Source: Oikopleura dioica
Taxonomy: Eukaryota > Animalia > Chordata
Assembly (NCBI GenBank): GCA_907165135.1
Contig: OU015566.1
Span: 6,200,001-6,264,000, forward strand
DNA: 64,000 bases
Direction: 5' to 3'
In this document: in pieces, positions 3,119 through 52,295 of the stretch
How positions within the stretch are numbered: the first letter of the stretch is position 1
Layout of the letters: every line of letters starts with the position of its first letter
Notes under the pieces: model-generated
The model's input: only the letters and a program-made list of their open reading frames with translations
Database searches by the model: none
What the model was told of the DNA's origin: nothing
Position numbers and translations under genes: made by a program

Positions 3119-6100
3119 TTACTGGACACAATAATCTACAGGAGAAACGAAGATGATCGGACTCATAACTTGCGTTCCTTGATCTGCGACAACATCAGTC
3201 GATATAAAATTATCTTCGGCGTCTTTTTCAAAGGTTCAAAAAACTCAAAACATTTTTAACTGATAAAATTTTGAGAAATTTAGCAGCTGGAGCCTTTGCC
3301 TAAACTTATTTTTTGAACTGAAGATTCGTATCCTAAGAATGCGAAGATCATTGCAGCTGAAGACTTTTCATCCGCAGTATAACCAGGAAAAACAAAGACA
3401 GAGTTTCCCAAATTAATTGCTGATGGATATTCAACAGCCTAAAAGAAGAAAAGTAGCTCAAGAATGAGAAGCCATTACCAATGACTCATTAGTGAATCCT
3501 CGAAAAAACTAAGAATACCTTTGAAAGAGAGCCAATTTTCGACCACTGGTTGTTCTTCAGTTTCCAAATTTCACTCGACTTTTCGTCTGCCGTTAAATCA
3601 TCACCTCCAGCGGTCAAAAGAACTCCTGAAGGTAGTCCCACAGTTGCGCAGCTCTTCAGCGATCTTCAACTTTTAAAAGGGTTCAGCAAAAGCTCGCTTA
3701 CCGTGGATGCTCCTGAAGTGAAGTCCATCCTGCTCCGTCCCAAGCTTCAACTGCCCCCTGTGCGCCTTTTCCTCCGACAGCCGTCGGCTGGCCATTGTAC
3801 AGTCCAAATCCACCGTAGTAGTGTTTTATTCTCGTTTCGTCTATTAAATCGGAAGTAAGACCATCGAACACCTCGCAGTTTTGATCATTGACTTCGTCGA
3901 AGCAAATGATGGCTTGAAATAAGTTATCATAAATAATTTTCAACAAAAAACCCAAAACTCTGATGAGAGGAGAAGATGGGCATTCTGTTACCTTTATCTC
4001 CTGTTTTAACAGAAAGAGCGGCGTGACTATAAGAATAAGAATAAATCAAGCGCACCGGTAATTCGGTCATCATGCAGCCATCTAACCGAGCAATCTATAA
4101 TTTTATAAGTGTTTTATGAATAAATTATGATAGAAGTTAAAGTTACTCTATTTTCGTCGTCGTATCCGCCAAAGATATGGAGCTGGTCGTTGACGAGTGC
4201 TTGCCTTGAGTGGAGAGTATAGGACGAGATTTTATTTTTGTAGATGTTTGCCGCCATATCGTATAATTTATAGTCAGCAGGAGATTTGAGGGATAGTGAT
4301 TTGCTCTCTCCGTTCTCGAGTAGCGCGTACGGGCGGTACGATGCAAGGGGAACAGGAAGAATCACATTTATCTGTCTCATCTGATTCGGAGAATAATAAA
4401 AGTTCTTTAATTTGGTGCCTTTGTCAAACTTGAAAAGTCGGACTTTTTTGTTTCCTGAATTTTGAAGGCCTGTCATTTTTATCGTTGATTTTGCCTTTGG
4501 CATTCTTTCGCCATTCTTTATGATTTCCAAAATCGACGATTCTGAGGAAGCACTAGAATGGAAAAGAAATTCAAGTTCCTCAATTTCGGATTCATTTGAT
4601 TTTGAAATTACTGTCTTCTGGAAATAATCAGAATCGACCCAAATCGAGCTATTAGCACCCATTCCAAAGCTAAATAGACTCTGCCCGTCGAAAAATTTCA
4701 GCTCGAATATCTTTGCTGTTCTTCGCGTTTGGTGATGACTCTGATGCGGTTGGAGATGAAGTCGGAACCTCTGCGTTCCATTGAAATTCATTTCAAAAGT
4801 CGAAATGTGGCTCAATTCTTCGAGCGATGAAAAATAATTGTCTGGAATCAGAGTTTTGAACTGGAAACTTGGGCGAGAAAATTGAGACTGAAACACTGGA
4901 TTTTTCGAAAAAAGAGGAAAGACGTCGTCGTGAAAGGCAAAAAACGGATTGCTTGTGACATGCATTTTCTTGGACGATTTTCGCTGGACGAATTCGAGCT
5001 CGATTCTGTCGAAAAGGAAGACGATTTCGAATGTGATCTCGAAAACGTAGCTCTGAATAAAGATCCTTTCATCATTCACGATTCCATTGCCGAAGTACTC
5101 GCACTCGTCTTTGTTGAATCCCATCTGATCAGTGTAGTAAATGTCGTCCGAGGCAAATAATTTCGAGTAACAAACTGATTTTTCCTCGTAGTCAACAAGA
5201 GAGCCGATCCATTCGCTGTCTAGCACCAGAAATTTTCCGTCTGCCTCTAGCAGTACTGAGTAGAGCGTGTTGGAGAGTGGCACACTTCTTAAAACCAATA
5301 TCAAAATCAGTTTTCCCAAATCGATCTATTCAGAGTTTCACTTGATTTTCGGGGGATGATAAACGAAAATTATATAGTAATGTTCAGTTGAAACTCTTGT
5401 CAAGGGGATCACGTGAACAGGATCCAAATCCCTAAAATCAGCCGGAAGAAAAATTTCGTTCTTTTTCCATCCTTTTTCAAACTCTTCGCTCCTTCTTATT
5501 CGATTCAACGCCATTGTCGTTGAAAGCTTGATGTATCGATCGCCAAGCATCATGCTCATTAGATGGAAGACCTCGTTGAAGCTGACGGAAGAGAGCTTGG
5601 CATTGAAGTGATTGCTAGCGATGAAACCTTGCGCTTCTTCGAAACGATTCAAGTTGTAGTCTGGAGCGTAGTAGTAGCATTTATCCGACCTTCCTGTTGG
5701 CGAGCTTTTCAAGGTCAAAATCAAAGAACCATCTTAGCCCACATTAATTTTTGACCATTTTCAAATAACGACGACAGGAAAAACTTTCATATTTTTGTCT
5801 TTCCGACGGATCTCAATTTGGTGAGTGCCGATTGATGAACGAAAATGGAAGATGTAAAACCCTCTTTTGAATGCAGTTTGTTCAAATTGCAAAGAAAAAT
5901 AAAGAACTTACATATCATTGCGTCTGTTTGAAATAAAAGTCGGGAAAAATCCGTCTTCTTTCACGATCAAAAGATTTCCCTTTGCATCAACCAAGTAATG
6001 CTCGCCATTGAGAAAGGCAGCACCAGTTGACTTTGCCGTTTTGACGATTATTTTAGAAAAAAAATTATTGTCAGTTTCAATAATTCAACAAAAACCGTTC

Positions 6101-7437
6101 ATATGGAACAAGAGAGTCAAGAGCATTTATGTTGACATTTTTGGAATTCTCCGACAAGTCATGAAGAAGAATCGAAAATTGATGAGTTGGTAGAGACTTG
6201 CGACCCTCCCATCGGCCAGTTATCTTTTCGATTGATTGGTATTCGTGTGTGTTCTTTTTTGCTTTTGGCACTGTACTTGACTGAGTCGTTGCTGAAGAAG
6301 TTGTTGGTGGCTCGACAGCATTCGCTTCTTGGAGATTAGACTCTTCCGCTTCGCGCCCTGAAAAAAGTGCGAGATACCATTCTAGTGACATGCTAAAGTC
6401 TGTTTCCTCGTCTGTATCGTTGTGTGTTGACATCGTCGATTGCGCTGTCGTGGATGTTGGCTCATACGAAAACGTAGAAGTTAGCATTGCCTCGGCGAAA
6501 TTCTCTTTTTCGCTTAGATCAAAGACAGGGATGAATTTTTGCGGCGACTCGAATTTCTCACATTTGTAAAAAGGACAGGGACACCCACGAGAACAGTATT
6601 TCTGAGTCGGGCAAACTTCTCCCGCCGAGTCAAAGGATCGAGTCAGCTTGAAACAGATCGACTCGCAAGGCGGAATCGGGTTCGTCCTCGTTGATTCCAA
6701 AACAAGCGTTTTCGAGCAAAGATGGCGGCAGATTTTTTGATCGTAAAACTGCTTCTTTTGACAGCGGCGGAGATTGACGCGATTTTCCTCCGCTGAAAAG
6801 AGGATCGGGTCGCTTTCTTTTGGTCTGATGTCGAAAACTCGCTCAGAAAGGACGAACTTGCCCGTTTCACGGCATCTCTTCATTAGATCAGCGCAGTAGT
6901 CCATCGTTTCAATTCGCACGCATTTTTTGTAGTTTCGGTGGCAAGTCGAAGTCAAAAATGTTCTAACGGCTCGGGATTGTTCCAGAGAATAAAAATTTGC
7001 TGATAATAAAGAATTGAAAAACCCGATTAATTCAAGAAAATTTACCCAAGAGCATAATTGAAACCCAAAAAAGCGTGCCCGTGCCGAGATAGGTAAGCCT
7101 TTGAGGCGTCGTTGAAAAGCCATGCTCAGCAAAGCTTAGTTTATCGTTCACCTTCTTCTTCCAAGTTTTTTCTTCTTTCAGATCTGCTTGTTGTGTTTTT
7201 ATGTCTCGAGTAGTAAGAACTTCGTCGGGAAATAAGAAGACTTTGCCGTTTTTTTGTTTAAGAACGCCGATGCAGTCGCAGTCCAAACACTAATTATGCT
7301 TTCACAACCAATTGAACAAACTACAGGGCCTCTTGTACAGGCATTTTAAGGACAATCAACTCTTTAAGAAAATGAACCTGAACTTTAGATGTGTTCTTTC
7401 GTCTCAAATTCGTCTCATTTTCGATGATCAAAACCAT
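3119..7437 (-). CDS. Multi-exon type II membrane protein with Cys-rich CPC-C-GCPC module, Ser/Thr-rich stalk and C-terminal kelch-like repeats (gene X copy 1)
   Basis: Exons include CDCIGVLK, TM segment LTYLGTGTLFWVSIMLLG, CPTQKYCSRGCPCPFYKC, HIFGG, LYNGQPTAVGG, end SPVDYCVQ*; homologous to 50706-54603. Confidence 0.75.
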
Positions 7438-19621: not shown

Positions 19622-20676
19622 GGTTGATTAGCTATCCAGCGAGTCACTCAGTAGCTGTTTTTACTAATTAATAAATTCGTTAATTAAGACTCTAGCGAAA
19701 AGTAGGCCGCGCAAATCATTAGGGCGCTAGTCTATTACTCGATTGGATTAAAATAGACCCTCCAACGAGTCGCTTTATTGATGCAAAATTACAAATATTA
19801 ATGCGCTTCAAAGATTTTCTCAATAAGAGAGTGGTTCAATACACCGAAAGGAGGAAACGCCCTGTCAACGTAGAATTAAAAATGAGTCCTCCATGATTCC
19901 AAGTGATACAGCGCTCTTTTTTGATAAAAATATATTCATAATTTTTTAAGTTTTGAAGTTGAGCGACCCAATATCGAAAGCTTTAACGGGCTGGGTGGAA
20001 TTTCTCTTTATTTGAAGATTTTACGCCTTATATTTGAGGGTATGGTACGCGCACAGGGTCAAGTCTCAGAATCGGTTTTTGACCATATATTCTGAATCCC
20101 CATGAAATTCTGAGTGTAGAAAGATGTGTCAAAATCTCTTCTGATTAGACTTTAGCGTTATTGATTTTTTGGAATCTGATTGGATGATCCGCCGAATCCA
20201 GATATCTTATTGGTCTTTAATTTGACCCAAGTTTCAGTAAAAATTGTCGCATTTTTTCCCTTTCTGAATCAAAATTCTTTATTAAAAAAAAAGTTAAAGT
20301 AATTAACTTTTAAAAACTCGATCTTATTGAAAACATAACTTATAAATAATTTGTCGAATTCTTACCAAAAAGCCATATTTTGTCTCTGTTTCAATAATCG
20401 TTATTCTATTCTCAAGTCTGAGCGGAGCGTAATGTTTTGAATTGATTTATTAAAAATGCATCTGAATCGGTGCAGAATGATGATCTCCGCACGCTCTGCC
20501 GTCTCGCCTCATCGCAACCCACGGCAAAGCTCATCCCCCTTTTTTCAAGAAAGCGGATTAACGTCCTGTCACTGCCAGTCCGTCTCAGAAGGCTATTTTT
20601 GTCCGTCTATTTGCGACGCCTTTATTATTGAAAAAAAAATTAGACCGTCCGACTTATTTTTAATAAAGGGCGAAAA

Positions 20677-21088
20677 TGTAGTGTTTCTCATTAGTCATCC
20701 GCCACTTGAGTTCACCGCGCTGCGCCGCGCGCAGTTCACGACCCGCGAAGCGCTATTCACGACTCGCGAAGCGCATTTCACCACGCGCAAACGCTCCGCC
20801 GCAAACCGCGAAAGCACAGTTCACCACGGACTAGGATCAACTCACGACTCACGAAAAAGTCACTCACCACGATCTAACAGCTCACCACGGTTTATGAAAA
20901 CCATATATAAACGATCTTATTTCTCACTGACACAGTTCACACACACACAACTCTACTTTTTACTCAGAGACACCACAATAAAACTTGCTCTTTTTAACAA
21001 CGTTCGTCGCTCACTATTTGTATTCCCGCTCGCGAATACGATAAACGCAATTAGTTATCCAACTTATGTACTGTGAGAAACACGTACA
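20677..21088 (+). repeat. 5' LTR
   Basis: Direct repeat of 27543-27954; TATATAA 20904-20910, AATAAA 20977-20982. Confidence 0.97.
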
Positions 21089-21093
21089 TATTT

Positions 21094-21110
21094 TGGTGAC
21101 TGAAGAAAAC
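21094..21110 (+). promoter_or_regulatory. Candidate primer-binding site TGGTGACTGAAGAAAAC
   Basis: TGG 5 nt after the LTR end; primer RNA not identified. Confidence 0.5.
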
Positions 21111-21238
21111 GGAACTACAATCCAGCTAGAGACAGAGAATTCCTGCTGAAATTATCCTGACGCTCTACAGACCGTGGTTATCGAAGAACTGACTCAAGTT
21201 ACTACAGGTTAGTCCATTTGCTCCATTTTAACGGTGTC

Positions 21239-22507
21239 ATGGGAGAACTTTATTATAAGTTCGTAGTCGATTTGACTGCGAAAGAAATTATGCTTATCTA
21301 TGACGAAAATCCGAGGCGAAAATATCCGCTCCCTATTCCTCGATTTGACAAGTCTGGATGTGTCCTGAATTTGCTCGATATTCAGCCTGACTTGTTCGAT
21401 ACTATGGATAAGAAATATTTCTTTCGAAAAACGGGTCAAAAACTCGAATATGATCCCGATTTCGATGTGAACAACATTCAAGAAGCAGTTCAGAAGACTG
21501 CCCGGGCGGATCATAAAATTGATATAGCTAAAATCAACGAAATCGTTGTTGTAGATAACCTGAACTCAATTTTTGCTCGAATTGAGGAGTCTGAAAAGAA
21601 GGAAACAAAGTTCCAACCACCACCCTCTGACTCTAAACCAGCTGGTTCTGCTCCAAAAACCGGAAATGCTCCTAAACCAGATCCTGCTCAGAAAAAGAAG
21701 GAAGCATCACCGGATCGATCAAAGCCCTTTGGACAAATAAAAATGAAAACCCCGAAGTTCGACTCGCAACTACCAGTTGAAAATTGGATCGTCAACATGG
21801 AACTCTATGGAAATTGCTCTAAAATTTCAGATGCAGATCTTATAAGCGTCGCTCTATCTCAAATTCTTATGGAAGAAAGTGGAACCTCTTTGATTGAAGC
21901 CATTACAGAAGAAGAGAAGAAGAACTGGGAAAGTTTCAAAACAAAGCTCATCCAAGTTCTCGGCAAAGATAAAGAACACTTTAAATATCTCTACACTTCG
22001 TTCCAGAGAGGCCAAGAGACTCAGCAAATGGCAGTTACGAAGCTTCAAGCATACTTCAAAAAGGGATACGGAAAGCTGGTACTTGACGCTGCAGATGAGT
22101 CAATTATTTGTGACCGATTTATCGAATGCCAGGATCCGCGACTTGCCGAATTGCTACGACGAGAAAAATCTCTGCTCAATCTTCAAAATATCGCTCAACG
22201 TGCTATGGAACTAGAACGTAGCTTCTACAAACGAGAAAATATCTTCGCAGCTGAATGCCTAAATAATGAAAAAGAATCTGAAATGGCTCAGCTCTGCTCT
22301 ACGCTCAAAGAAATGATCGCTACCGCCAAAGAACCTGCAAAGGAGAAAAAACGAAAACCAAGAGCGAGAATCCCTACTGACAAGCTCCAAGGACACTGCA
22401 TCGCCTTTGTTCGAAATGGTCGATGCCGATTTGGCGAAAAATGCAAATACCTCCACTCAGAAACAGTTCCAGAAGAAGTCGAGAAGATCATCAAGAAAGA
22501 GGCATGA
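21239..22507 (+). CDS. gag: Gag with C-terminal CCCH zinc finger
   Basis: 422-aa ORF from the first ATG; capsid-like KFDSQLPVENWI region; CIAFVRNGRCRFGEKCKYLH. Confidence 0.9.
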   Translation: MGELYYKFVVDLTAKEIMLIYDENPRRKYPLPIPRFDKSGCVLNLLDIQPDLFDTMDKKYFFRKTGQKLEYDPDFDVNNIQEAVQKTARADHKIDIAKINEIVVVDNLNSIFARIEESEKKETKFQPPPSDSKPAGSAPKTGNAPKPDPAQKKKEASPDRSKPFGQIKMKTPKFDSQLPVENWIVNMELYGNCSKISDADLISVALSQILMEESGTSLIEAITEEEKKNWESFKTKLIQVLGKDKEHFKYLYTSFQRGQETQQMAVTKLQAYFKKGYGKLVLDAADESIICDRFIECQDPRLAELLRREKSLLNLQNIAQRAMELERSFYKRENIFAAECLNNEKESEMAQLCSTLKEMIATAKEPAKEKKRKPRARIPTDKLQGHCIAFVRNGRCRFGEKCKYLHSETVPEEVEKIIKKEA

Positions 22508-25500
22508 CTATCAAAAGTCATTGAAACTTGCGAAAGTGCTCTTTTCGCACCGGCCTCCCTTAAATTCGTCAACATTCAGCTCAACGGACTAAAATTTCCC
22601 TGCCTTATCGATAGTGGCGCAAGTAGGACATGTTTACGCTCAGACGTCCTAGATCTCCTTCCGTCTACTATTAACAAACAAATCCCATCTTCAATAAAGC
22701 TCAAGTGTGCGAACTCAGAAATCGTCAATGTGAAAACGCTCAGCTCTCCAATCGACGCCAAATTTGAAACCAGCTCCTCGCCACTTAAATTGAAGCTGGA
22801 CCCGCTCATCGTTCAAAACCTATCTTGCCCGATCATTTTGGGGATGGATATCCTTAAAGGAATAACAATCGAAGAAAACTCAATTACGCTCAAAAATAAG
22901 GTTATTCCAACAATTGATCCAAATTCCTCTGATATGTTCCTAACTGGTTTGATCGAAATTGATAAGGAAACTAGTCGCGAAAAAGAAGAGTACGAAAAAT
23001 TCGTAAAACTACGATCAGAAAAAGCTCGCAAAATAAACTTTGTTCCCAAAATTGGATCTTATGGCTCGACTGATCCAATACAGAAGAAACAGCTCGAAAC
23101 TTTAACTCACAAATGGCGACTCTCCTTCAACATGGACACAAACGATCTTGGTCGACTCTTTGGTTTCAGATATTCGCTCCCATTATATGACGAAACAAAA
23201 TCGGCACACCAACCGCCGCGGAAAATTCCCATTCACCTAGTGCCAAAAGTCAGTGACCAGATGGAAAACTGGAAGCAGCTCACTGTCATTCAAGAGACAC
23301 AATCAGCATTTAACATTCCGCTCATTATACTCCGTAAAAACGATTCTTCAATCAGAGTTTCTTTGGATGCGCGAATGATCAATGAGCTGTTGCAGAAAGA
23401 TCGCTTCCCATTGCCAAGTATGCAAAGTGTTTTTACGTCAATTGGGGAGAAACTTACTGGTAAAGAATGCTACATTAGTTCAGTAGATTTCTTTCGCGGA
23501 TATTGGCAAGTGCTCATTCATGAAGCTGATGCCCACAAGATGGCCTTCAGTTACGACAACCGACATTACCAAGCTAACCGGATGCTCTATGGATCATGCA
23601 ATGCCCCAGCCTGTTTTTCTAGAATCATGAACAAGCTGATGGAACATGACTCTATTCTGCTTTATTTGGACGATTTGATCGTGATTGACAATAATTGGGA
23701 AAACCATCTGCAAGCACTAGAATTTGTCTTTAAAACCTGCTACGAACATGGGCTAGTCCTGAATGCCGCAAAGTGTAAGCTCGCCAGTACAGAATTAGAT
23801 TTTCTTGGTCACAGAATCACTTCTGATGGTATCAAACCGCTCCGAAAACATCTTGAAGCGATTGAAAAGATGGAACCACCGACAGACAAAGCTGAACTGA
23901 AGAGATATTTGGGCATGGTTAACTTTAATGTTAAATTCATCAAACGCGGAAGTGAAATCCTGTCCCCGCTCTATCGTCTGACATCAGCAAAAGCGAAATA
24001 CGAGTGGTCCGACATCCACCAGAAAGCTTTTGATACAGTAAAAAGTGAACTCCTGAAAGAGCCGACTCTCGCGCACTTCAAACCCGGATGCAAACTCGTC
24101 CTTGTTACCGACTCATCTGGATACGCAGTCGGAGGAACACTTTATCAAGTTCAAAACGATCGATTCGCACCCCTTGGATACTTCAGCAAAGCTCTTACGG
24201 GTCCCGACCTCAAGCGACCAATGAGAATCAAGGAACTCTTCGCTCTCTGCTGGGGAATCCAATTTTTTGAGTACTACCTGATCAACTGCGAATTCGATTG
24301 TTATGTTGACCATAAATCATTGCTCTATCTATTTCGGGAATCACGAAAACAGAAATTGGACATAAAATTATGTAATGTACATAATTACCTCCTCGCTTTT
24401 AACTTCACGATCATTCACAAAAGCGGATCAAGTCCTGAAATGGCCTCTGCAGATTTCTTCAGCCGTTTACCAAAGTCAAAAAGCTCTGACCTTGAGAGAG
24501 ACTCCGAAAACTTCTTCGACGTTGATGAAACAATCTTTGCATTGTCAACGTTAACAACAAGTGATGTTATCTTCTCGTTCGAAAACCGATCATTTACAGC
24601 AGAGGAAATGGCAACTGCTCAAGACGCATGCTCAGTTACAAGAAATCTTCGAGTGAAAGCGAAGCTGAACAAGTCACCGAAAAGACTTATGCTCAAAAAT
24701 GATGTTCTTTATTCAAATAACAGATTGGTTCTTCCAAGCGCTGTTGCTGATGAATTTATCTCTTATCTGCACTCCCTGACAGCTCATGCCGGAAGTCAAC
24801 AGCTCCTGCAGATGCTACGAAAATTCTTTATAAGCAACATACAACAGAAAGTTCGCGCGATCACAAGCTCCTGTGAAACATGCATTCGACTCAAGCCGTT
24901 CAAACAAATGAGACCTTCGCTCATAAAGGATCGCCAATTTGCTCAACTCCCTTTTGAAAAGGTCCATATTGACCTTGTGGACTACGCACGACCAGATCAA
25001 GCTGGAAAACGATACCTGCTCACCGTCGTTGATAGCTTAAGTGGCTACCTCGATGGAGAACCGCTCTCAAACAAGTCCGACAATCTCGTTGCTAAGGCTC
25101 TTCTGCGAATAATACTGAGACACGGAATATCCGAAAATTGTATTTCTGATAATGGCAAAGAGTTTGGTCCGAAAACAACAGCCATCCTCGACAGATTTGA
25201 GATACGCCGCAGTACTACAAGTGCCTATTACAGTAAGTCAAATGGAAAGTGCGAACGAATCCACCGAGAAATTCACCAGAAGCTCAAAAACCAACTCGCC
25301 ACAAATCGCACTTGGTCCGACTACTGGCCAATGGTACAGTACTTTCTAAACAACACTCCAAAAGGCTCCTTGGATGGTTTATCAAGTAATGAAGTTGTGT
25401 ACGGAAGACAATTTCATGTTCCTTATTCGCTCAAAGAGCCGATCACAGAAAATATCCAGCCATTCATTAGAGGGTTAAATTCATATTTCAAGAAGTTACA

Positions 25501-26041
25501 TCCTGCTCTGCTTAACTTCCAAGTCCAACGATACCAGTCATTGTTAAAACGTGACAAGAACAACTGTCCGGTTTTACCAATTGGAAGTAATGTTCTCTGT
25601 TGGAAACCTGATCCTTACTCTGGAAAACTTGGATTGTCCTGGTCTGGACCGTTCAAAGTTCATAGAAGGCTTTCAAAAGACAGCTACATTCTGAAGTGCC
25701 CGCTCACCAGAAAAGAGTACCGTAGAAATATTAGTCTGATCCGACCGCTCAAAGTCAAAACTGAGGACGATAAAACGCAAGTGATCTGCAGTGACAAGCC
25801 TCAAAACGACTTCAAACCAGAAAAAGTTCAAGCTCAAAAATCAGCTCCTTGTTCAAAACACACTGAAGATCCAAAACAAGCTAAATCTAGTAAATCTGCT
25901 CTGAAAGATGAAGAAGCTCAAGCTCACAATCCTTGCTCAGAAGACCCTCCTAGTACAGTCAATGATCGACTGCTGATCAATCAAAAGGATAAGAAGGATT
26001 CAATATGGAAAGATCGTCTTCGCTCTAGACAAAAACAATAA
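22508..26041 (+). CDS. pol: Pol polyprotein (protease, RT, RNase H, integrase), in frame with gag after a TGA
   Basis: LIDSGAS (~22604-22624), YLDDL, VTDSSGYAVGG, VDHKSL, H-x4-H..CETC, DLVD/SDNGKEF/KCER, WSGPF; open frame from 22508. Confidence 0.97.
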   Translation, partial: LSKVIETCESALFAPASLKFVNIQLNGLKFPCLIDSGASRTCLRSDVLDLLPSTINKQIPSSIKLKCANSEIVNVKTLSSPIDAKFETSSSPLKLKLDPLIVQNLSCPIILGMDILKGITIEENSITLKNKVIPTIDPNSSDMFLTGLIEIDKETSREKEEYEKFVKLRSEKARKINFVPKIGSYGSTDPIQKKQLETLTHKWRLSFNMDTNDLGRLFGFRYSLPLYDETKSAHQPPRKIPIHLVPKVSDQMENWKQLTVIQETQSAFNIPLIILRKNDSSIRVSLDARMINELLQKDRFPLPSMQSVFTSIGEKLTGKECYISSVDFFRGYWQVLIHEADAHKMAFSYDNRHYQANRMLYGSCNAPACFSRIMNKLMEHDSILLYLDDLIVIDNNWENHLQALEFVFKTCYEHGLVLNAAKCKLASTELDFLGHRITSDGIKPLRKHLEAIEKMEPPTDKAELKRYLGMVNFNVKFIKRGSEILSPLYRLTSAKAKYEWSDIHQKAFDTVKSELLKEPTLAHFKPGCKLVLVTDSSGYAVGGTLYQVQNDRFAPLGYFSKALTGPDLKRPMRIKELFALCWGIQFFEYYLINCEFDCYVDHKSLLYLFRESRKQKLDIKLCNVHNYLLAFNFTIIHKSGSSPEMASADFFSRLPKSKSSDLERDSENFFDVDETIFALSTLTTSDVIFSFENRSFTAEEMATAQDACSVTRNLRVKAKLNKSPKRLMLKNDVLYSNNRLVLPSAVADEFISYLHSLTAHAGSQQLLQMLRKFFISNIQQKVRAITSSCETCIRLKPFKQMRPSLIKDRQFAQLPFEKVHIDLVDYARPDQAGKRYLLTVVDSLSGYLDGEPLSNKSDNLVAKALLRIILRHGISENCISDNGKEFGPKTTAILDRFEIRRSTTSAYYSKSNGKCERIHREIHQKLKNQLATNRTWSDYWPMVQYFLNNTPKGSLDGLSSNEVVYGRQFHVPYSLKEPITENIQPFIRGLNSYFKKLHPALLNFQVQRYQSLLKRDKNNCPVLPIGSNVLCWKPDPYSGKLGLSWSGPFKVHRRLSKDSYILKCPLTRKEYRRNISLIRPLKVKTEDDKTQVICSDKPQNDFKPEKVQAQKSAPCSKHTEDPKQAKSSKSALKDEEAQAHNPCSEDPPSTVNDRLLINQKDKKDSIWKDRLRSRQKQ

Positions 26042-26318
26042 GATGAGATGTTCAACTCATGAATTGCTCAATAGAAACTCGAATAATGAAGTATAAAAGC
26101 CCTGTTTGCCGTTCGAACGATGCTCAAATACAATGATCACAACTTTAGCGATATGATGCACACTCGTAAAGAGAGAGAGAGAGTCAAGTTCCGTTCAATC
26201 GCCGTGAAAGTTTATACAGGCCACTGTGGATTTACGACCGCATAAAATTGATTATGTTCAAGTAATCGGCGCCCTCTACTTGCACCGCTATTCCTAACCT
26301 TGCGCCGTACTTCCGCAG

Positions 26319-26531
26319 ATGTTGGCAATGTGTGCAGTTGCCAATCACCTTATTCGAAAATATGTTCTTGCCGCATTCTCCCAGCTCGAATGGAACGATG
26401 CGAATCTCCTTGTTCTTAAAGGGGGAAGAGAAGAAATGAAAACTGCTCGTTTGCTCACAAATGTTCAATTGCTCACTTGGTTTTTCGAAAAGCTCCTGCT
26501 CGAGTTCGCAGTCGAGAATCCAAATCGATGA
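26319..26531 (+). CDS. Retroelement accessory ORF-a (70 aa)
   Basis: ATG directly follows CTAAC..TTCCGCAG acceptor; stop overlaps the next ATG (ATGA). Confidence 0.55.
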   Translation: MLAMCAVANHLIRKYVLAAFSQLEWNDANLLVLKGGREEMKTARLLTNVQLLTWFFEKLLLEFAVENPNR

Positions 26532-26818
26532 AAATGGCTGTTCAAACAGAAAAAAACATCCCCGCGCGCTGCAACACTCGAAATCTCCCGCGCCAGGACA
26601 AAAGGGACCCGTCGTCACATCCCTGTTCCCCCAACGTGAAAATGGAAATGCACCGACTGAAACAAGCCAAATCGAAAAATGACTTTACAAGAAGAGACAA
26701 GAAGCTCAACAGATCAACCACGCTAGTCACAGTTCCTACGATCACACTTATCCGTGTTTCAAGTGGCAAAAAGAGAAGTCCGGAAGTAATTAAAAGAAAA
26801 AGTGTTTCTATCATGTAA
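26528..26818 (+). CDS. Retroelement accessory ORF-b (96 aa, Lys/Arg-rich)
   Basis: ATG overlaps the ORF-a stop; basic clusters RRDKKLNR and GKKRSPEVIKRK. Confidence 0.5.
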   Translation: MKMAVQTEKNIPARCNTRNLPRQDKRDPSSHPCSPNVKMEMHRLKQAKSKNDFTRRDKKLNRSTTLVTVPTITLIRVSSGKKRSPEVIKRKSVSIM

Positions 26819-26837
26819 ATTGCTAAGCAGAAGAGAA

Positions 26838-27521
26838 ATGCCGACTAACCTTGAAACAGATATTTTCCACCTTCAGAGATGCTGCATAAAACGAAGATAC
26901 CAACAATTCGCGCTCAATTTTGTCATGGGAATAAAAATACCAATTGTGGAAGAAATCGACTGTGAGAAAACTCTAGTTATTAGAGAGCTTCTCGAAGAAA
27001 TCGAAGTATCTATCAAGGAAAAGACAAATTGGTTCCAAATCTTGACTCAAAAATCGCTCAATCTCAGCACGATCGACAGTAACCTGAAGTGTCTCCTTAT
27101 CTTTTCCTGCAAATGCCTAATACTTACTGCCCAAGGAGCAAATCCGGAAACAAGAAATTCAATTGTCTCCGAATATGCAAGGAAATGGGCAAAACAAAGG
27201 TCTGTTTGGAGAAGACTTGAAAATATCGAAATTTCCGATCTACGAATTCTGAAATCTGAGGTCACCTTCATAATTCACGAACACCTGAAGCACCTTGGGT
27301 TGAGAGACTCACGAACAAACACCTCGGCTCATTCAGAAATACAGTTCATCGAAGAAGTAAATGATGTTCCGGTTGGCCCAGCTCAACAGCCGCTCGTTGA
27401 CTCTCCCGTCAACCAAAACGATCCTTTCGCCACGATTACTGCTTATGGACAAAACATCCTTGATGAAATCTTGGACTTTCAAACACAGGACATTCCTCTA
27501 CCAGAAAGACAAACGATCTAA
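26838..27521 (+). CDS. Retroelement accessory ORF-c (227 aa), not Env-like
   Basis: Long open frame ending just before the PPT; no signal peptide or TM helix; acidic C-terminus. Confidence 0.65.
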   Translation: MPTNLETDIFHLQRCCIKRRYQQFALNFVMGIKIPIVEEIDCEKTLVIRELLEEIEVSIKEKTNWFQILTQKSLNLSTIDSNLKCLLIFSCKCLILTAQGANPETRNSIVSEYARKWAKQRSVWRRLENIEISDLRILKSEVTFIIHEHLKHLGLRDSRTNTSAHSEIQFIEEVNDVPVGPAQQPLVDSPVNQNDPFATITAYGQNILDEILDFQTQDIPLPERQTI

Positions 27522-27529
27522 AAATAAAT

Positions 27530-27539
27530 GGAGGAGGAA
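27530..27539 (+). other. Polypurine tract
   Basis: GGAGGAGGAA three nt upstream of the 3' LTR. Confidence 0.8.
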
Positions 27540-27542
27540 TTA

Positions 27543-27954
27543 TGTAGTGTTTCTCATTAGTCATCCGCCACTTGAGTTCACCGCGCTGCGCCGCGCGCAG
27601 TTCACGACCCGCGAAGCGCTATTCACGACTCGCGAAGCGCATTTCACCACGCGCAAACGCTCCGCCGCAAACCGCGAAAGCACAGTTCACCACGGACTAG
27701 GATCAACTCACGACTCACGAAAAAGTCACTCACCACGATCTAACAGCTCACCACGGTTTATGAAAACCATATATAAACGATCTTATTTCTCACTGACACA
27801 GTTCACACACACACAACTCTACTTTTTACTCAGAGACACCACAATAAAACTTGCTCTTTTTAACAACGTTCGTCGCTCACTATTTGTATTCCCGCTCGCG
27901 AATACGATAAACGCAATTAGTTATCCAACTTATGTACTGTGAGAAACACGTACA
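27543..27954 (+). repeat. 3' LTR
   Basis: No differences from the 5' LTR seen by eye. Confidence 0.97.
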
Positions 27955-28406
27955 AAAAGGGATCAGAATATCAAGGGATTAATCAAGAGTTCACTTTCCA
28001 GCCCAGCCCTCGTTGGACTTGTGCTTCTTTCCACTCCATCTTTGTTTGACTAATGATTTGAAGATCGCTTTAGCCATTTCGTTTTTCTTTGATTCTCTCT
28101 ATCTAAGCAAAATCAAGACCTGCATCCTTCTTTGTTTCAATATATGGAATTTTATTCGACCCAAATGGATCGCTAACTAGTAAAGCTAATCCAGCATTTT
28201 AGAAAGATTAAATTTTTATGTCGGGATAAAATGAGTCCCGATCGATTCCGAAAATCAATCGAGAATTATGAAGAAAAAGCTGAGTTTAAAAATTATTTTT
28301 CAGGAATCAGGGATGCATTTATTAAATAAAAGGTCAGGGAAAATCAGGAAAGTCGGGAAATGGGCTGATAGTAGGCCGCTGATTATAAATATTTCTTTTC
28401 AGATTT

Positions 28407-36717: not shown

Positions 36718-38254
36718 ATGAAGCTCTCGCTGTTTTTTCTCGCCAGCAACGTCGCCGCCAACTACGAAAAGAGATTTCAGAATTTCGTGTGGCAAGTTCA
36801 AGCGCAGCGGGCCCAACTTTGCGCGGACAAGTTAGAAGAGACCAGAGACCAGGGAGAGTTAAAACTTATTTCGAAAAATTTTGAATGTTGGAAAATTCAA
36901 TAACTCTGAAGAAAGCTACCAATCGAAAATGGATATTGGAACTGTCCCGATCTCGACGAGATCAAATCGAATAAGCAATGCTTTCCACGATGCAACGATG
37001 GATTTAAGAAAACTTGGCAAACTAAACCAAGAAAAATTCAGCCAACGATTCTTGCTACATGCTACAAGTCGCCGAAAATCGATAAAAAGTATGAAAAAAT
37101 ATAATAAAGCCTTGCCATCCTAACTTTCTTTCAGAAATCTCCCAGAAGAAACATCGCTTTCTTGTGCTCTCGACGTAAAGCCGCCTCATCCGTGTCAAGA
37201 AAAAGCTGCAACAATCGAGATTTTCAACGGAACCCTCGTTTTGACCGACACAATCAGCCCGAAGAGGGCGACATTCAACATTGTCTGCGATGATGGAACA
37301 GTGAAAGACGAAATCACTTGTGCAAAGCAAAAGAAAGGTGTGTTTTTCAAAAAGCCGAGCTGGAGCGATCAGATCACCTACTGGCAAGACTCGTGGAGAG
37401 ATGTTTGCATGGAGTTCGCGCCCTTGACCAACTCGACGACTACCGATCTTCAAACTTGCTCTGAGTCTGACAACTTCCCCCAACTTGCAGGAACTACGGA
37501 CAAAATCATCGGCGGAGTGCAAGTCGAGGAGAACGAGTGGCCTTGGATCGCCCATTTGACATTTGACTTGAACGATGGCGAGGAGCGACTTTGCGGAGGA
37601 AGCGTCATCGCCAATAGATGGGTCATCAGCGCCGCCCACTGTTGCCTGGACGTGCTCAACATCGTCGGGCGCTTTGGAGATCTGAACGCGACGGAATTTG
37701 ATAGCAACGAGTATGAGCTCGAAGCCAGCGCCTGGTTCAACCATCCCGAGTACGACCGCCATGCTGATGACAAAAACAACGATGTCTGCCTCATCAAATT
37801 CAACGGAGACATCATTGCCAGTGACCCAGACAGCAAAGTTCAGCCTGTTTGTCTTCCAAAAGAAGTTCATCAACACGGCGCCGCTTGCTGGGTCGCTGGG
37901 TGGGGATCCTTTGAATTTATGGGTGGTCCCCAAAACCCGGATCTGCACTCAGTCGGAGTGAATGTCTTTAGCGCAGAATATTGCCTTGCGAATTCCCTTA
38001 TTTCCCTCGCGGCTGACGACATCTGCGCCTACAAACCAGATCTCAACGGTGACGGACTCGTCGATGCTGGCGCTTCCTTTTGCGATGGGGATTCAGGCGG
38101 ACCTCTCATCTGCCCAACCGATGGAAAAGCAACTCTCGTCGGGGTCGTTTCTAGAGGAACCGGATGTACCTTTGACGGATATCCTAATAAGTACACTTCG
38201 ACCTTCGCTACTTCCAATTGGATCCACGAGACTGTCGCTGCCGAGGGACTTTAA
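36718..38254 (+). CDS. Secreted S1 serine protease with two sushi/CCP-like modules, paralog P1
   Basis: Signal peptide MKLSLFFLASNVAA, K|IIGG activation site, SAAHC, DVCLIK, GDSGGP; 3 exons. Confidence 0.92.
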
Positions 38255-39132: not shown

Positions 39133-40109
39133 GAGACGGGAGCTTTTCCAGCCATTAGCTTTTCCAGCCGTTAGCTTTTCCAGCAAATTAGAATTTCCAG
39201 CAAGGCTGGAAAAGCTAACGGCTGGAAAAGCTAATGGCTGGAAAACTTCTTTCTGATTGATATTTTTCTAATGAAAATATAGTTTGATAAATAAGTACTA
39301 TTTTTATTAAAATGTATTTACTTTGTGAAATATCATAAATTATGATTCATAATTAATTAATAATCGTCGATTAATATAAGAATTATCAAGAGATCGTTTT
39401 CAAAGGAGGTCAGGATTCTTGGTACTCCTTTTCCAAGTTTGATACTGGAGTAATGCTACCCTTTTTGCCACTGATCCCTTTGAAGGGATTAGCGCCCGAC
39501 GCCGGAGCCACTTTCCGCCCAGAGCGAGAGTTCGAAAAGTCCGAAAGTCGAAAGTGACAAAAAGGTTGAACATTACTCGCAGTACAAAAATCGGAACAAG
39601 GAGTACCAAAATCCCGACCTCCTTTAACCCTACCCGGCCAAAAATGATTTTTCTCGGGTACCGGTCAAGATACCCCATATTTGGCGCCGGAGATTTACCC
39701 GCAAATAAGACTATACAAATGATAAAGGTCAAATTATATGTCTTTGAGGATGCAATAGAAAAACCGCTCTAGAATGAGTTTCTTAGAAATTATACGTTAA
39801 ATATTGTGAGGTACTTGGAAATGAGTAAAAACCTGCTCCATATTTGGAGTACCTTGACCGGCTAGGGTTAAAAACGATCTTTCGATAAATTTCATATTAA
39901 TCGACGATTATTAATTAATAATGAATCATTCTTAATGATATTTCACTAAGTAAATACACTTTTTAATAAAAAGTACTTATTTTATCAGTTTATATTTTCA
40001 TTAGAAAAATATCAATCTGAAAGAAGCTTTTCCAGTATATTAGCTTTTCCAGCAAATTAGAATTTCCAGCAAGGCTGGAAAAGCTAATGGCTGGAAAAGC
40101 TCCCGTCTC
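39133..40109. mobile_element. MULE-like non-autonomous foldback element
   Basis: 9-bp TSD ATTTTTTCT, GAGACGGGAGCTTTTCCAGC TIR extending to ~280-bp arms; absent at the paralogous site near 48335. Confidence 0.9.
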
Positions 40110-40473: not shown

Positions 40474-42014
40474 ATGAAATTTTCCAATATTATTCTCGCC
40501 ACTAATGTTGCCGCAATATACACGGATAAGTTTCAAAATTTAGCAGCCCCAGTTCAAGCGCAACGAGCAGCAACCTGTTCGGATAAGCTAAAAGAGGCGA
40601 GAGACAAGACAGAGTTTTAATTTCTTTAATTCAATTGATCTGAACCAGGATCAAAAAGGTTTTAACAAATTATAACTCTGATTCAAGCTTACCATTGAGG
40701 ATGGACATTGGGAATGTCCTAATATCGATGAAGTAAAACATCATCTCCGGTGCTTCCCAAAATGCGACAGTGGGTTTGAACCAACATGGTCCGTCAAGCC
40801 TGGTAGAAAACAACCAAAGCTCAACGCAAAGTGCTTTCAGTTCCCGAAAATCATCAAAAAGTAAGATTCAGCGACCATTTGAACAGCGTTTATCTTTTTT
40901 AAGAAATATTGAAAAGGGAACTTCCCTCTCCTGCGTTCCACGAACACCTCATCCGTGTGAAGACAAAGCTGGCTTCATGGAGATTCTGGATGGGTCTCTC
41001 GTTTTGACGGAAAAAATCAACTCAAAGAGAGCGAAATTCAACCTTGTCTGCGATGATGGAACAGTGCAAGGCGAAGTCGTCTGTGTCAACAGAAAAGAGC
41101 AGGTCTATTTCCAGGAACCGGAATGGAGCAATCAGATCACGTGGCAAGACTCGTGGAGAGATATTTGCAGAGAGTTCGCGCCTCTGACCAACTCGACCAC
41201 TACTGATCTGGAAACTTGCTCTGAAGCCGACAACTTCCCAGAACTTGCATCAGTTGAAGGAAGAATCATCGGTGGAGTGCCAGTCGAGGAGAACGAGTGG
41301 CCTTGGATCACCCATTTGACATTTGACTTGAACGATGGCGGGGAGAAACTTTGCGGAGGGAGCGTCATTGCCAATAGATGGGTCATCAGCGCCGCTCATT
41401 GTTGCCTTGACGTGCAGAAGATCGTCGGTCGCTTCGGAGATCTGAACGCGACGGAATTTGACAGCAACGAGTATGAGCTCGAAGCCAGCGCCTGGTTCAA
41501 CCATCCCGAGTACGACCGCCATGCTGATGACAAAAACAACGATGTCTGCCTCATCAAATTCAACGAAGACATCATTGCCAGTGACCCAGAGAGCAAAGTC
41601 CAACCCGCTTGTCTTCCAAAAGAAGTTCACCAACACGGCGCCGCTTGCTGGGTCGCTGGGTGGGGATCTTTTAAATATTTTGGTGGTCCCCAAAACCCGG
41701 ATCTGCACTCAGTCGGAGTCAATGTCTTTAGTGCAGAATATTGCCTTGCGAATTCCTATATTTCTCTCGAGGCTGACGACATCTGCGCCTACAAACCAGA
41801 TCTCAACGGAGACGGACTGGTAGATGCTGGCACTTCCTTTTGCGACGGAGATTCAGGCGGACCTCTCATCTGCCCAACCGATGGAAAAGCAACTCTCGTC
41901 GGCGTAGTTTCCAGAGGAATCGGATGTACCTTTGACGGATATCCTAATAAGTACACTTCGACCTTCGTCACTTCTAATTGGATCCAAGAGACTGTAGCTG
42001 TCGAGGGACTCTAA
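40474..42014 (+). CDS. Secreted S1 serine protease P2
   Basis: VEGR|IIGG, intact H/D/S triad; first intron 40612-40687 is GA-AG. Confidence 0.92.
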
Positions 42015-42406: not shown

Positions 42407-44849
42407 ATGATAGAAAAATCAATTTTGAAAACCAGAGTCAGGGTAGAGCCAGCTTCAATCTTTGTTTGAAATCTTACTTTTTTAAAGTGTTTCGACTGCG
42501 ACTGCATCGGTGTCTTGAGAAAAAAAGGGAAAAAGGTTTATTTATTCAGCGACGAAATTTTAGCAACTCGCAGTATTCATACTCAAGAAGCCGATTTGAA
42601 AAAGGAAAAATCATGGAAGAAGAAGATGACCGATCAACTGAGCTTTGCAAAGCACGGAAACTCAACGATGCGCCAAAAGATTGCTTATCTTGGAAGTGGC
42701 TCTCTTTTCTGGATATCGATCATGCTCCTCGGTAATTTTTCCTTTGATTTTTTGAAAAAAAAAATTTTTTTTTTCAGCAAATTTTATTTCATTAGAGAAT
42801 TCTCGAGGCGTTTTAACTTATTCGACTTCGACTTGTCATCGAAGCTACAAGAGCTGCGTCAAAACCGAATCAATGGATTTATGCGGACATCTGATGAAGA
42901 AGTGCTATGAAACGAAAATATTCCTCCAGCCCCCGAAAATTGTCAAAATCAAAGCCAAAGAACACAAAGTCCCTGAGTTCACCAAAGAAGACAACGAAGT
43001 CAATCTGCTCCGCTGCCAGAAGAAACAGTTTTACGACCAAAAAATCTGCCGACATCTCTGTTCTCAAACGCTTGTTTTGGAGTCGAAAAGGAACGGCCCG
43101 ATTTCGCCCTGTGAGTCGATTTGCTTCGGATTGACAAGATCGTCGGATGCCGCTGGAGAAGTTTGCCCAACGCAAAAATACTGCTCCCGAGGCTGTCCAT
43201 GTCCCTTTTACGAATGCGAAAAATTGGAGTCTCGTCAGAAATTGATTCCTCTTTTCGATGTCCAAAATTCAACACAAACATCAACCATTTACAAATCTGA
43301 CCGAGAAATAACGAATGGCGATGTTGAATCAATCACTGGCCGATGAGTGGTCGCCTCTCGCCCAGATCGCCTCTTGCCCAGATCGCCTCTCGCCCAAGAT
43401 CGCCTCCCGCCCAAGTTGGGCAAAAGGCGACCTGGGCGAGAGGCGATCTTGGGCGAGAGGCGATATGAGATTATTTTAAATGTAAAATATCAATGACTTG
43501 GGCGAGAGGCGATCTTCGGAAGGAGACGACCACTTCGAAATGACCCGATTTAGAATTCCCTGTCATGATATTTACCCGCTCAGCAGGTACCTTTAGCCGC
43601 TATAATGTTAGGCAGTCTATCTTTGGCAAGCTTGAAATGTTCATAGGGTGAGCTTGAACTGTGGAGAAAAGTTCGAACTTATGACATCACAGCACGCTAC
43701 TGAAGTTCCATAAGTACCAAACTTTGGACACTGCGCGTCGGTTAAAGTAGCAGGGGATGCGATACATGAAAATATTTCTTTCAAATGAGTTTATTTAAGG
43801 ATGGTTTAGGCTTAACGACGATAGGTACTTGCTGAGCGGGTGCAAGTCATGATAGGGAAGTCTAAATGGAGTTATTTAAGAGTGTTCCAAGCCTTCTTCC
43901 TTAGATCGCCTCTCGCCCAACTTGAATTAGTCCTTCTTAGTTTACATTGAAAATAATCTCATATCGCCTCTCGCCCAAGATCGCCTCCCGCCCAAGTTGG
44001 GCAAGAGGCGATCTGGGCAGGAGGCGACTTGGGCGAGAGGCGATCTGGGCGAGAAGCGACCACTCCTGGCCGATGGGAGAAAAGAAAGACGAAAAACCAA
44101 AAGTTTCCAATAATTCTGTCTGATTTTAGTGGTCTTGGCGATCTAGTGATAACAAATGCTTCATCATTTTTATTTTCTTACGAACGGTTTTCTTAAGATA
44201 CAGTAATTAACAGTTAGTACTTACACTTTTTATGGAATTTTTGGACATTTTTGAGCAAATCATGGGACAAAAAATGTCCAAAAATTCCATAATTAATTGT
44301 AAATAACATACCCTGATCGAAAATTAACAAACCTGGAAAGTCGACGGGTTCCACTTTTCTCAACGGCGAGCATTACCTTGTCGATGCGATTGGAAACATG
44401 ATGAGAATGCCCGAAGATGGTGATGCCCCGGTTTTTGTATCGAATCGAATCAATAGTAGAGGAATGTAAGTTGCTGTCTTCGAGTCAGATTCTTCCTTTC
44501 CTCCTTTAAGGGGTTTCTTTGTTTTCCACTTTTGCTCTTCAATAGGAACTCATCAAATTGAAATCCGCCGCAAAGAGAAAGGCACGAAGATATTTTCTGT
44601 GGTTGTTATCTGGCAAAGGTCAAGAAAATTCTAGTTTATTTTTTTTCGAATAAGTTCTTGAGCCCTAAAACCTCACCGACACAAAGGGATGAGAAGTGCT
44701 ACTACTACGCGCCAGAATACAACTTGAATCGCTTCGAGGAGGCCCAAGGCGTCATTGCCAGTAAGCACTTCAACGCGAAAGTCTCGTCAGTAAGCTTCAA
44801 AGGGGTCTTCCCTCTGATGAGCGCTCTGTTGATTGCGAACACGTTCTAA
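42407..44849 (+). pseudogene. Gene X copy 2, MULE-disrupted and 3'-truncated
   Basis: Exons match 50706 onward; 721-bp insertion within the ITGRW codons; homology ends at 44824. Confidence 0.8.
43345..44065. mobile_element. MULE-like non-autonomous element in a coding exon
   Basis: 9-bp TSD CTGGCCGAT (43336-43344, 44066-44074); TIR GAGTGGTCGC(C/T)TCTCGCCCAGATCGCCTC with tandem subrepeats. Confidence 0.92.
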
Positions 44850-51100: not shown

Positions 51101-52295
51101 CGAGGCGTGACGACCTACTTGACTTCGACTTGTCATCGAAGCTACAAGAACTGCGTAAAAACCGAAGCGATGGATTTATGCGGACATTTGATGAAGAAAT
51201 GCTATGAAACGAAAATATTCTTCCAGCCCCAGAAAATTGTCAAAATCAACGCCAAAGAACACAAAGTCGCTGAGTTCAGCAAAGAAGACAACGAAGTCAA
51301 TCTCCTCCGCTGCCAGAAGAAACAGTTTTACGATCAAAAAATCTGCCGACATCTCTGTTCTCAGACGCTTGTTTTGCAATCGAAAAGGAACAGCCCGATT
51401 TCGCCCTGTCAGTCGATTTGCTTCGAATTGACTAGATCGTCGGATGCCGCTGGTGAAGTCTGCCCGACGCAAAAATACTGCTCTAGGGGCTGTCCCTGTC
51501 CTTTTTACGAATGTGAAAAGTTGGAGTCTCGTCAGAAATTGATTCCTCTTTTCGATATCCAGAATTCAACACAAACATCAACCATTACCAAAATTGCTCA
51601 AGAAATAACAAATGGCGATGTAGAATCAATAACTGGCAGATGGCGCAATAGAAAGATGGAAAACCAAAAATTCCCGATAGTTCTTTCTGATTTTAGTGGA
51701 CTTGGCGATCAACAAATAACAAATGCTTCATCATATTTGTTTTCTTACGAACGGTTTTCTTGAAATAATTAATTAACATAACCTGATCGAAAATTCATAA
51801 ACCTGTGAAAGTCGACGGGTTCGACTTTTCTCAACGGCGAGCATTACCTCGTCGATGCGATTGGAAACATGATGAAAATGACCGAAGATGGTGATGCTCC
51901 GGTTTTTGTTCCGAATCAAATCAACAGTAGAGGAATGTAAGTTGTTGTTCTTGAGTCAGATTCTACCTTTCCCCCTTTTAGAGGTTTCTTTGTCTTCCAC
52001 TTTGGCTCTTCAATAGGAACCCATCAAATTGAAATCCGCCGCAAAGAGAAAGGCACGAAGATATTTCCTGTGGTGGTTATCTGGAAGAGGTCAAGAACAT
52101 TCTAATTAATCTCTTTTTGGAGGACTTCTTGACCCCTAAAAGCTCGCCGACACAAAGGGATGAGAAGTGCTACTACTACGCGCCAGAATACAACTTGAAT
52201 CGCTTCGAGGAGGCCCAAGGCTTCATTGCCAGCAAGCACTTCAACGCGAAAGTTTCTTCCATTAGCTTCAAAGGGGTCTACTCTCTGATGAGCGC
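48138..52295 (+). repeat. Segmental duplication unit 2 (protease P3 + 5' part of gene X copy 3)
   Basis: Colinear with 38869-44824. Confidence 0.9.
48764..50310 (+). CDS. Secreted S1 serine protease P3
   Basis: VEER|IIGG, intact triad; first intron 48902-48983 is GA-AG. Confidence 0.92.

Follow-up and report, generated by a model that had tools for sequence, protein, structure and literature searches.

The Tor elements are the main long terminal repeat (LTR) retroelements in a genome that ranks among the most compact of any animal, and they have been studied as possible endogenous retroviruses because many of them carry env. In Oikopleura dioica, Tor3b and Tor4b consist of gag, pol and a third gene, and the Tor Env protein, which is a membrane glycoprotein, is marked by a C-terminal membrane helix, F-x-G and N-[L/V]-G motifs, seven cysteines and cleavage by furin (Henriet et al., 2015, PMC4402516). 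Its mRNA is made in two ways: in Tor3a it is spliced from the LTR transcript, using a donor near the gag start and an acceptor upstream of the third gene, and in Tor3b and Tor4b it begins at an internal promoter, which in Tor4b (Penv) lies in a spacer behind pol (PMC4402516). Tor groups and single elements that lack env have been mentioned by Henriet and colleagues, but no other third gene (PMC4402516). Here we describe an LTR retroelement from a 64,000-nucleotide (nt) stretch of O. dioica DNA (assembly GCA_907165135.1, contig OU015566.1, positions 6,200,001 to 6,264,000, forward strand; this whole stretch is hereafter the window), which likewise has gag, pol and a third-gene region, but whose third-gene region holds three open reading frames (ORFs), ORF-a, ORF-b and ORF-c (Table 1), without the features of a Tor Env. 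With moderate confidence, we read it as a Tor-type element in which the env slot is occupied by a non-envelope cassette, ORF-c being expressed from a subgenomic RNA and encoding an adaptor protein.

That a third ORF need not encode an envelope is already known from bdelloid rotifers, whose Ty3/gypsy-like LTR retrotransposons carry a non-envelope ORF3 that varies by lineage (Rodriguez et al., 2017, PMC5408684). The third ORF is non-envelope here too, but while the bdelloid ORF3s encode a GDSL esterase, a DEDDy exonuclease or small membrane proteins (PMC5408684), ORF-c encodes an orphan helical protein with a disordered tail. What is new is therefore not the principle but its form here: a lineage of Tor that carries an accessory gene of an orphan family and perhaps two more small genes. 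The phrase 'undescribed element class', used in an earlier note on this DNA that was made from the sequence alone, goes too far, since the element is of the Tor type and it is the kind of third gene that is new.

Table 1. Features of the retroelement and of its third-gene cassette (window coordinates; aa, amino acids; pI, isoelectric point).
Feature	Position	Strand	Remarks
LTR retroelement, whole	20677-27954	+	7,278 nt
Putative target-site duplication AAAA	left 20673-20676, right 27955-27958	+	4 nt; low complexity, hence weak evidence
5' LTR	20677-21088	+	412 nt; identical to 3' LTR
21-nt unit, three times, in 5' LTR	20735-20795	+	
TATATAAA in 5' LTR	20904-20911	+	
AATAAA in 5' LTR	20977-20982	+	
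Primer-binding-site-like stretch	21094-21105	+	begins TGG; 5 nt past LTR
Splice-donor-like CAG/GTTAGT in leader	21205-21213	+	31 nt ahead of gag ATG (21239)
gag	21239-22507	+	422 aa from first ATG; unbroken; C-terminal CCCH zinc finger
pol	22508-26041	+	in the gag frame, behind a single TGA; unbroken
Non-coding spacer behind pol	26042-26318	+	277 nt; five upstream ATGs
TATAAAAG in spacer	26092-26099	+	TATA-box-like; TATAAAA at 26092-26098
Branch-point-like CTAAC in spacer	26294-26298	+	
Acceptor-like pyrimidine-rich stretch and CAG	CAG ends 26318; CAG/ATG 26316-26321	+	abuts ORF-a ATG
ORF-a	26319-26531	+	70 aa; predicted helical/hydrophobic; codon usage as gag/pol
ORF-b	26528-26818	+	96 aa; pI 11.3; 24 lysines and arginines; weak coding signal
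ORF-c	26838-27521	+	227 aa
ORF-c conserved basic all-helical domain	26838-27308	+	residues ~12-157; pI 8.6
ORF-c acidic disordered tail	27309-27518	+	pI 4.05
Polypurine-tract-like GGAGGAGGAA	27530-27539	+	just ahead of 3' LTR
3' LTR	27543-27954	+	same sequence as 5' LTR

ORF-c is a genuine protein gene, because shuffled sequence does not reproduce its length, its codon usage resembles that of gag and pol, and nine relatives align with it from residue 1; it belongs to an orphan family present in Oikopleura dioica and on marine metagenome contigs. None of 2,000 dinucleotide shuffles of the region yielded an ORF of this length. An exhaustive search of 1.84 billion representatives recovered nine cluster representatives (E 4e-13 to 1.5e-4, 111-323 aa), each of which aligns from its own first residue to ORF-c residues 1 to ~155 with 22-31% identity, while a word-index protein search gave no match with ORF-c itself and only the O. 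dioica member with the family profile. In the family alignment Q13, K18, R20, Q23, G31 and L86 are invariant, and M1, L12, L26, L59, I109, R121 and W124 are found in at least 90% of the rows. Conservation covers a domain of about 150 residues, and the tail is fast-evolving. That the start methionine is kept at such low identity speaks for ORF-c as an independent cistron and against an exon continued from upstream.

Eight of the nine relatives' clusters derive from marine metagenome or run assemblies, several being multi-copy. The ninth, and the sole named one, is O. dioica OKI2018_I69 YSR g17201, which is two gene numbers away from g17203 on one 2.9-Mb contig; g17203 encodes a protease-reverse transcriptase-RNase H protein that is 52% identical to the pol product of our element. 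Going by these gene names, the ORF-c family appears to travel with Tor-like pol genes. One relative, P0006, has a lysine/arginine-rich in-frame extension (residues 1-31) before the conserved start methionine, which recalls the basic C-terminal part of ORF-b but has no detectable similarity to it.

For the two smaller ORFs the coding evidence is graded. A codon model trained on gag and pol, cross-validated and expressed as a score per codon, gave 0.165 +/- 0.08 for gag/pol in frame and -0.30 +/- 0.15 off frame, and about -0.23 for all frames of the 277-nt spacer between pol and ORF-a. On this scale ORF-a scored 0.287, ORF-c 0.148, which is inside the in-frame range of gag/pol, ORF-b 0.056, in the lower tail of coding sequence, and a 73-aa third-frame ORF that overlaps both ORF-a and ORF-b -0.065. 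Lengths were borderline against shuffles for ORF-a (P ~0.02) and ORF-b (P ~0.05). Codon usage is the more telling of the two measures, and by it ORF-a and ORF-c look coding and ORF-b weakly so; ORF-a is likely to be translated, and ORF-b perhaps is. Relatives of ORF-a and ORF-b were found neither in Pfam, PHROGs and NCBIfam nor by a local search of 146 proteins; ORF-c, too, had no match in these three family libraries. Reading through their overlap, we saw no in-phase slippery heptamer for -1 frameshifting. Two antisense ORFs (26232-26618 and 26542-26814) were considered as genes and rejected, being at chance level (P 0.05 and 0.12) and without a family.

The protein encoded by ORF-c is modelled as a helical domain followed by a disordered tail. 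AlphaFold2, given a 10-sequence alignment, predicted seven helices with a core predicted local distance difference test score (pLDDT) of 80-95 and a disordered tail in which a single low-confidence helix covers the acidic/hydrophobic stretch; a single-sequence AlphaFold model was uninformative (pLDDT 35). Neither ORF-c nor any relative contains a membrane helix, a furin site or F-x-G, and across the family cysteines range from 0 to 7 per protein, with no conserved set. ORF-c is a soluble, non-membrane protein, neither a Tor Env (PMC4402516) nor a decayed Env. Sequence searches of the PDB with ORF-a, ORF-b and ORF-c found nothing, a weak match to interleukin-8 (E 0.11) being taken as chance. 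Close to the C-terminal end, at a distance of 7-28 residues, six of the seven full-length ORF-c relatives have a [PW]Px[YF] motif. The strict form, PPxY, is of the kind bound by the WW domains of Nedd4-family ubiquitin ligases.

Bcl-2-fold proteins recur, below significance, in both lists of structural matches that Foldseek returned for the ORF-c model (E 0.7-5; template modelling (TM) score at most 0.38, where TM >0.5 was sought). Among the entries are poxvirus A49 and A46, BAX, A1, a sheeppox inhibitor, herpesvirus BALF1, an iridovirus BCL2-like protein and adenovirus E1B small T, and the apparent likeness of the model to this fold may be used as a lead only. A possible origin of ORF-c as a gag-derived duplicate was rejected (hhalign probability 0.1% against the gag of the element).

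The Tor elements described are bounded by near-identical LTRs and a 4-5 nt target duplication (PMC4402516), and the element that carries this gene resembles them. Its LTRs are 100% identical over 412 nt each and have TG...CA ends, and the candidate duplication, AAAA, is of low complexity but of the size given for Tor (PMC4402516). There are no breaks in gag and none in pol, and we saw none in ORF-c relative to the domain of its family. The copy is young, as the LTRs are identical and gag and pol unbroken. In pol the domains run protease (DSG), reverse transcriptase, RNase H, integrase zinc finger and integrase core, which is the Ty3/gypsy order. Its closest relatives, on marine metagenome contigs, are 70-73% identical, and named Oikopleura dioica proteins 52-56%; taken together, Oikopleura and marine sequences share 44-73% identity with it, against at most 30% for other Ty3/gypsy pols. 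With pol nearest to Oikopleura and marine sequences, we provisionally assign the element to the Tor type (Ty3/gypsy, Oikopleura lineage), a grouping made by identities in a search where no match bore a Tor subgroup name. In sum it is a young, apparently intact Tor-type LTR retroelement of an Oikopleura-like tunicate; in this state, as in its spacer and the position of its donor, it agrees with the Tor elements published. Self-comparison revealed no further copies or fragments of it elsewhere in the window.

The layout of the cassette is as the earlier note had reported it. On re-reading, the sizes and positions of the three ORFs, the overlap of ORF-a and ORF-b in ATGA and the 19 nt between the ORF-b stop and the ORF-c start were all recovered, as were the donor, branch-point, acceptor and TATAAAA motifs, the acidic/hydrophobic tail of ORF-c and the lack of a membrane helix in any of the three ORFs, whose maximal 19-residue hydropathy (1.27, 0.73 and 1.51 for ORF-a, ORF-b and ORF-c, respectively) is below membrane-helix level. 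ORF-a and ORF-c share a reading frame. At its far end ORF-c stops 21 nt from the 3' LTR.

In these features the element accommodates both of the mRNA routes used by Tor third genes. On the one hand, Tor3a has a donor near the gag start and an acceptor upstream of the third gene (PMC4402516), and here a donor-like site precedes the gag ATG by 31 nt, with an acceptor-like site at the ORF-a ATG, although the Tor3a donors are non-canonical (GA) and serve to produce Env, while the donor of our element is a canonical GT. On the other hand, where Tor4b has a spacer behind pol with the internal promoter Penv, our element has a non-coding spacer with a TATA box. The motifs themselves are about as frequent in the window as chance would make them: TATAAAAG was found four times against 3.3 expected and YYNCAGATG 11 times against 8.2, and CAGGTWAGT a single time over both strands of the 64 kb against 0.4, this one copy falling in the ~150-nt leader. 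They thus carry weight by position alone, the donor being in the leader and the acceptor abutting an ATG.

We infer that the cassette is read from a subgenomic rather than the genomic RNA. Its start could lie within the 277-nt spacer, where an internal promoter would act as it does for env in Tor3b and Tor4b. Alternatively, transcription could begin in the LTR and the RNA be spliced from the leader donor at 21207 to the acceptor at 26318, the route taken by env in Tor3a. An RNA begun about 30 nt past the TATA box would carry five ATGs ahead of ORF-a, and their removal by splicing at the 26318 acceptor would help ORF-a to be translated. The position of ORF-c is harder to reach by scanning: 13 ATGs precede its own, one of them between ORF-b and ORF-c, and leaky scanning is implausible because of them. 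In eukaryotes reinitiation after a 96-codon ORF is unlikely as well. Together with the start methionine kept by the relatives, the 13 upstream ATGs suggest that ORF-c has a separate mRNA 5' end. This end, which we favour over reinitiation, might be formed at one of the AGs that end 2, 4, 7 and 10 nt before the ORF-c ATG, through either alternative cis-splicing or trans-splicing of the host spliced leader.

The second of these routes would suit the host. Trans-splicing affects at least 39% of O. dioica genes and resolves operons with intercistronic gaps of up to 60 nt (PMC7986045), the gap being typically 23-30 nt (PMC1488885). The cassette has the spacing of such an operon, with all three ORFs on the same strand, an overlap and a 19-nt gap, and an AG before the downstream ATGs (compare PMC7986045 and PMC1488885, citing Ganot et al., 2004). 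Spliced-leader-resolved operons are, however, not known inside Tor elements, and the cassette is likened to them by its sequence layout. Separate mRNAs, whether made by splicing or by spliced-leader trans-splicing, would seem at least as likely as reinitiation. Termination-reinitiation would fit only the ATGA junction between ORF-a and ORF-b, which allows for coupled translation but is no proof of it.

As for function, we suggest that the ORF-c protein would act as an adaptor. Its folded basic domain would bind a partner, either a component of the element or a nucleic acid, and host machinery would be recruited through short linear motifs in its disordered tail. For most of the relatives this motif would be the C-terminal PPxY-type one, directed at the WW domains of Nedd4-family ubiquitin ligases, and the window copy, which has no motif of this type, would presumably recruit through another motif in its tail. 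A more far-reaching version of this proposal, in which a Tor lineage has swapped env for a multi-cistron cassette resolved by host spliced-leader trans-splicing and the adaptor hands its partner to the ubiquitin-ligase or sorting machinery, we consider unlikely; if it were true, a chordate would harbour a 'complex' Ty3/gypsy retroelement whose accessory protein family has not been described before.

Several observations weigh against an adaptor-encoding cassette expressed from a subgenomic RNA. The PPxY-like motif is absent from the ORF-c of the window, and the adaptor idea would lean on the relatives and on general knowledge of PPxY motifs. Foldseek comparison of the ORF-c model with the PDB and BFVD gave no match at E <=0.001, and comparison of all family members with Pfam (E up to 1) and with PDB profiles gave none either; no function is supported by a match in fold or sequence, and the model itself is built on an alignment of only 10 sequences. 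All of the expression steps set out above are drawn from motifs whose frequency in the window is that of chance. Moreover, the codon score of ORF-b sits only in the lower tail of coding sequence, and the connection of the ORF-c family with Tor pol genes comes from gene numbering in one genome, without orientation.

The reading that we take most seriously beside our own, while doubting it, is that ORF-c is the sole gene of the region, ORF-a and ORF-b being chance or regulatory upstream ORFs in its leader, or parts of an intron or outron that is removed. The borderline lengths of both (P ~0.02-0.05), the 73-aa ORF that overlaps them, the position of ORF-b at the low edge of coding, their lack of relatives in the 146-protein search and the family libraries, and the AG acceptor candidates just ahead of the ORF-c ATG would all fit this. 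It is difficult to reconcile, however, with an ORF-a score that exceeds the gag/pol mean next to a spacer that scores -0.23 in all frames, with an acceptor-like site placed exactly at the ORF-a ATG, and with some 500 nt of filler, unlikely in a compact 7.3-kb element. Far less probable is that ORF-c is a host or domesticated gene that merely lies in or beside retroelements: the annotation of its O. dioica relative as an ordinary gene model (g17201) could be so understood, but ORF-c belongs to the element by position, with pol on one side and the polypurine tract and nearby 3' LTR on the other, and has the codon usage of the element, while the annotated relative neighbours a pol gene and the family is multi-copy and found on many short contigs. 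Even less credence, and very little indeed, is due to the idea that the cassette is a decayed env whose frameshifted pieces mimic three ORFs. Although it occupies the env slot of Tor3a, Tor3b and Tor4b, behind a spacer like that of Tor4b (PMC4402516), the copy is young, with identical LTRs and unbroken gag and pol, the region measures merely 1.2 kb, and the ORFs have no Env features (C-terminal membrane helix, seven conserved cysteines, F-x-G or furin site), as judged by the published features, there being no named Tor Env among the search matches. The relatives of ORF-c are no fragments: complete at 212-323 aa, they share a conserved start, and most of them also the conserved C-terminal motif.

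The earlier note had gone further in another direction and proposed that the three ORFs form a polycistronic set of regulators with Rev/Tat/Tas-like roles, translated from one spliced mRNA, possibly by termination-reinitiation. Complex retroviruses do offer a model. The foamy virus genes Tas and Bet are accessory genes of a complex retrovirus under an internal promoter, and our element likewise has extra non-structural ORFs at its 3' end and possibly an internal promoter besides the LTR. The stop/start overlap of ORF-a and ORF-b and the short gap to ORF-c would suit such a set, as would the strongly basic ORF-b with its lysine/arginine clusters, the basic domain and acidic tail of ORF-c, a layout shared by many activators, the seven copies of a repeated motif in U3, which could be a response element, and the use of internal promoters by complex retroviruses to drive accessory genes (PMC4402516). 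Against this, there is no likeness to the accessory proteins of complex retroviruses in sequence, family or fold: searches made solely with the window's own proteins did not return Tat, Rev, foamy Bel/Tas, Tax or Rex from Pfam, from PDB sequences or from the folds compared with ORF-c, nor any solved or predicted viral structure. Nor did we find RNA structure of the response-element kind, the ORF-b region and the spacer folding no better than shuffles (z +2.3 and +1.15, respectively) and the cassette having nothing above threshold in Rfam, and the U3 motif TCACSAC is missing from the spacer. It is improbable that ribosomes would reinitiate past a 96-codon ORF and 13 ATGs, and the relatives of ORF-c retain their own start methionine. 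An activator could have such a basic domain and acidic tail, but nothing specific speaks for one. We thus find a regulator set distinctly improbable. What survives of the accessory cassette envisaged in the earlier note is that it is not an envelope, that it contains at least one conserved gene for a non-membrane protein, that ORF-a and, weakly, ORF-b have coding-like codons, and that its splice and promoter motifs are placed as those of env are in published Tor elements (PMC4402516).

Were a conserved non-envelope third gene to be borne out, the slot behind pol would be modular in a chordate host also, as it is in bdelloid rotifers. It would further bring in a family of orphan proteins that seems to be restricted to appendicularians and has a short linear motif of the sort typical where host machinery is hijacked, and would raise the question of how a retroelement expresses tightly packed cistrons in a host with operons and trans-splicing.

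Other parts of the element deserve mention. The C-terminal part of gag (22390-22507) matches zinc-finger families of the CCCH type, C-x8-C-x5-C-x3-H (E 1e-6 to 2e-5); the Gag of retroelements usually has a CCHC knuckle and not CCCH. At the gag/pol junction (22505-22510) the two genes share one frame, with a single TGA followed by CTA, a layout that implies stop-codon read-through instead of frameshifting. No tRNA genes were found in the window. The U3 repeat regions of the two LTRs (20735-20888 and 27601-27754) each comprise the 21-nt unit three times and seven copies of TCACSAC, such that the LTRs account for 14 of the 19 copies in the window, for the whole of which about nine would be expected; this cluster looks like a factor-binding array. 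An AATAAA at 27523-27528 directly follows the ORF-c stop, before the polypurine-like stretch and upstream of the AATAAA in the 3' LTR. Long ORFs also run through the LTRs (20456-21076, 206 aa; 27361-27942, 193 aa), the 3' one overlapping the ORF-c tail; they have no family match and probably reflect stop-poor repeat sequence.

Outside the element, the window contains long ORFs of 240-401 aa that have no Pfam match (4114-5319 and 6077-7132 on the minus strand, 51041-51763 and 52117-53301 on the plus strand). Three paralogous ORFs for trypsin-like serine proteases on the plus strand (37241-38254, 40770-42014 and 49066-50310; Pfam Trypsin, E 1e-39 to 1e-41) look like a family of host genes in tandem, and short arrays of 16-17-nt units in both orientations flank them (39141-39245, 40025-40072, 43351-43464 and 43963-44060). 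Finally, a minus-strand ORF at 62229-63647 encodes a reprolysin/ADAM-type metalloprotease domain together with its propeptide.

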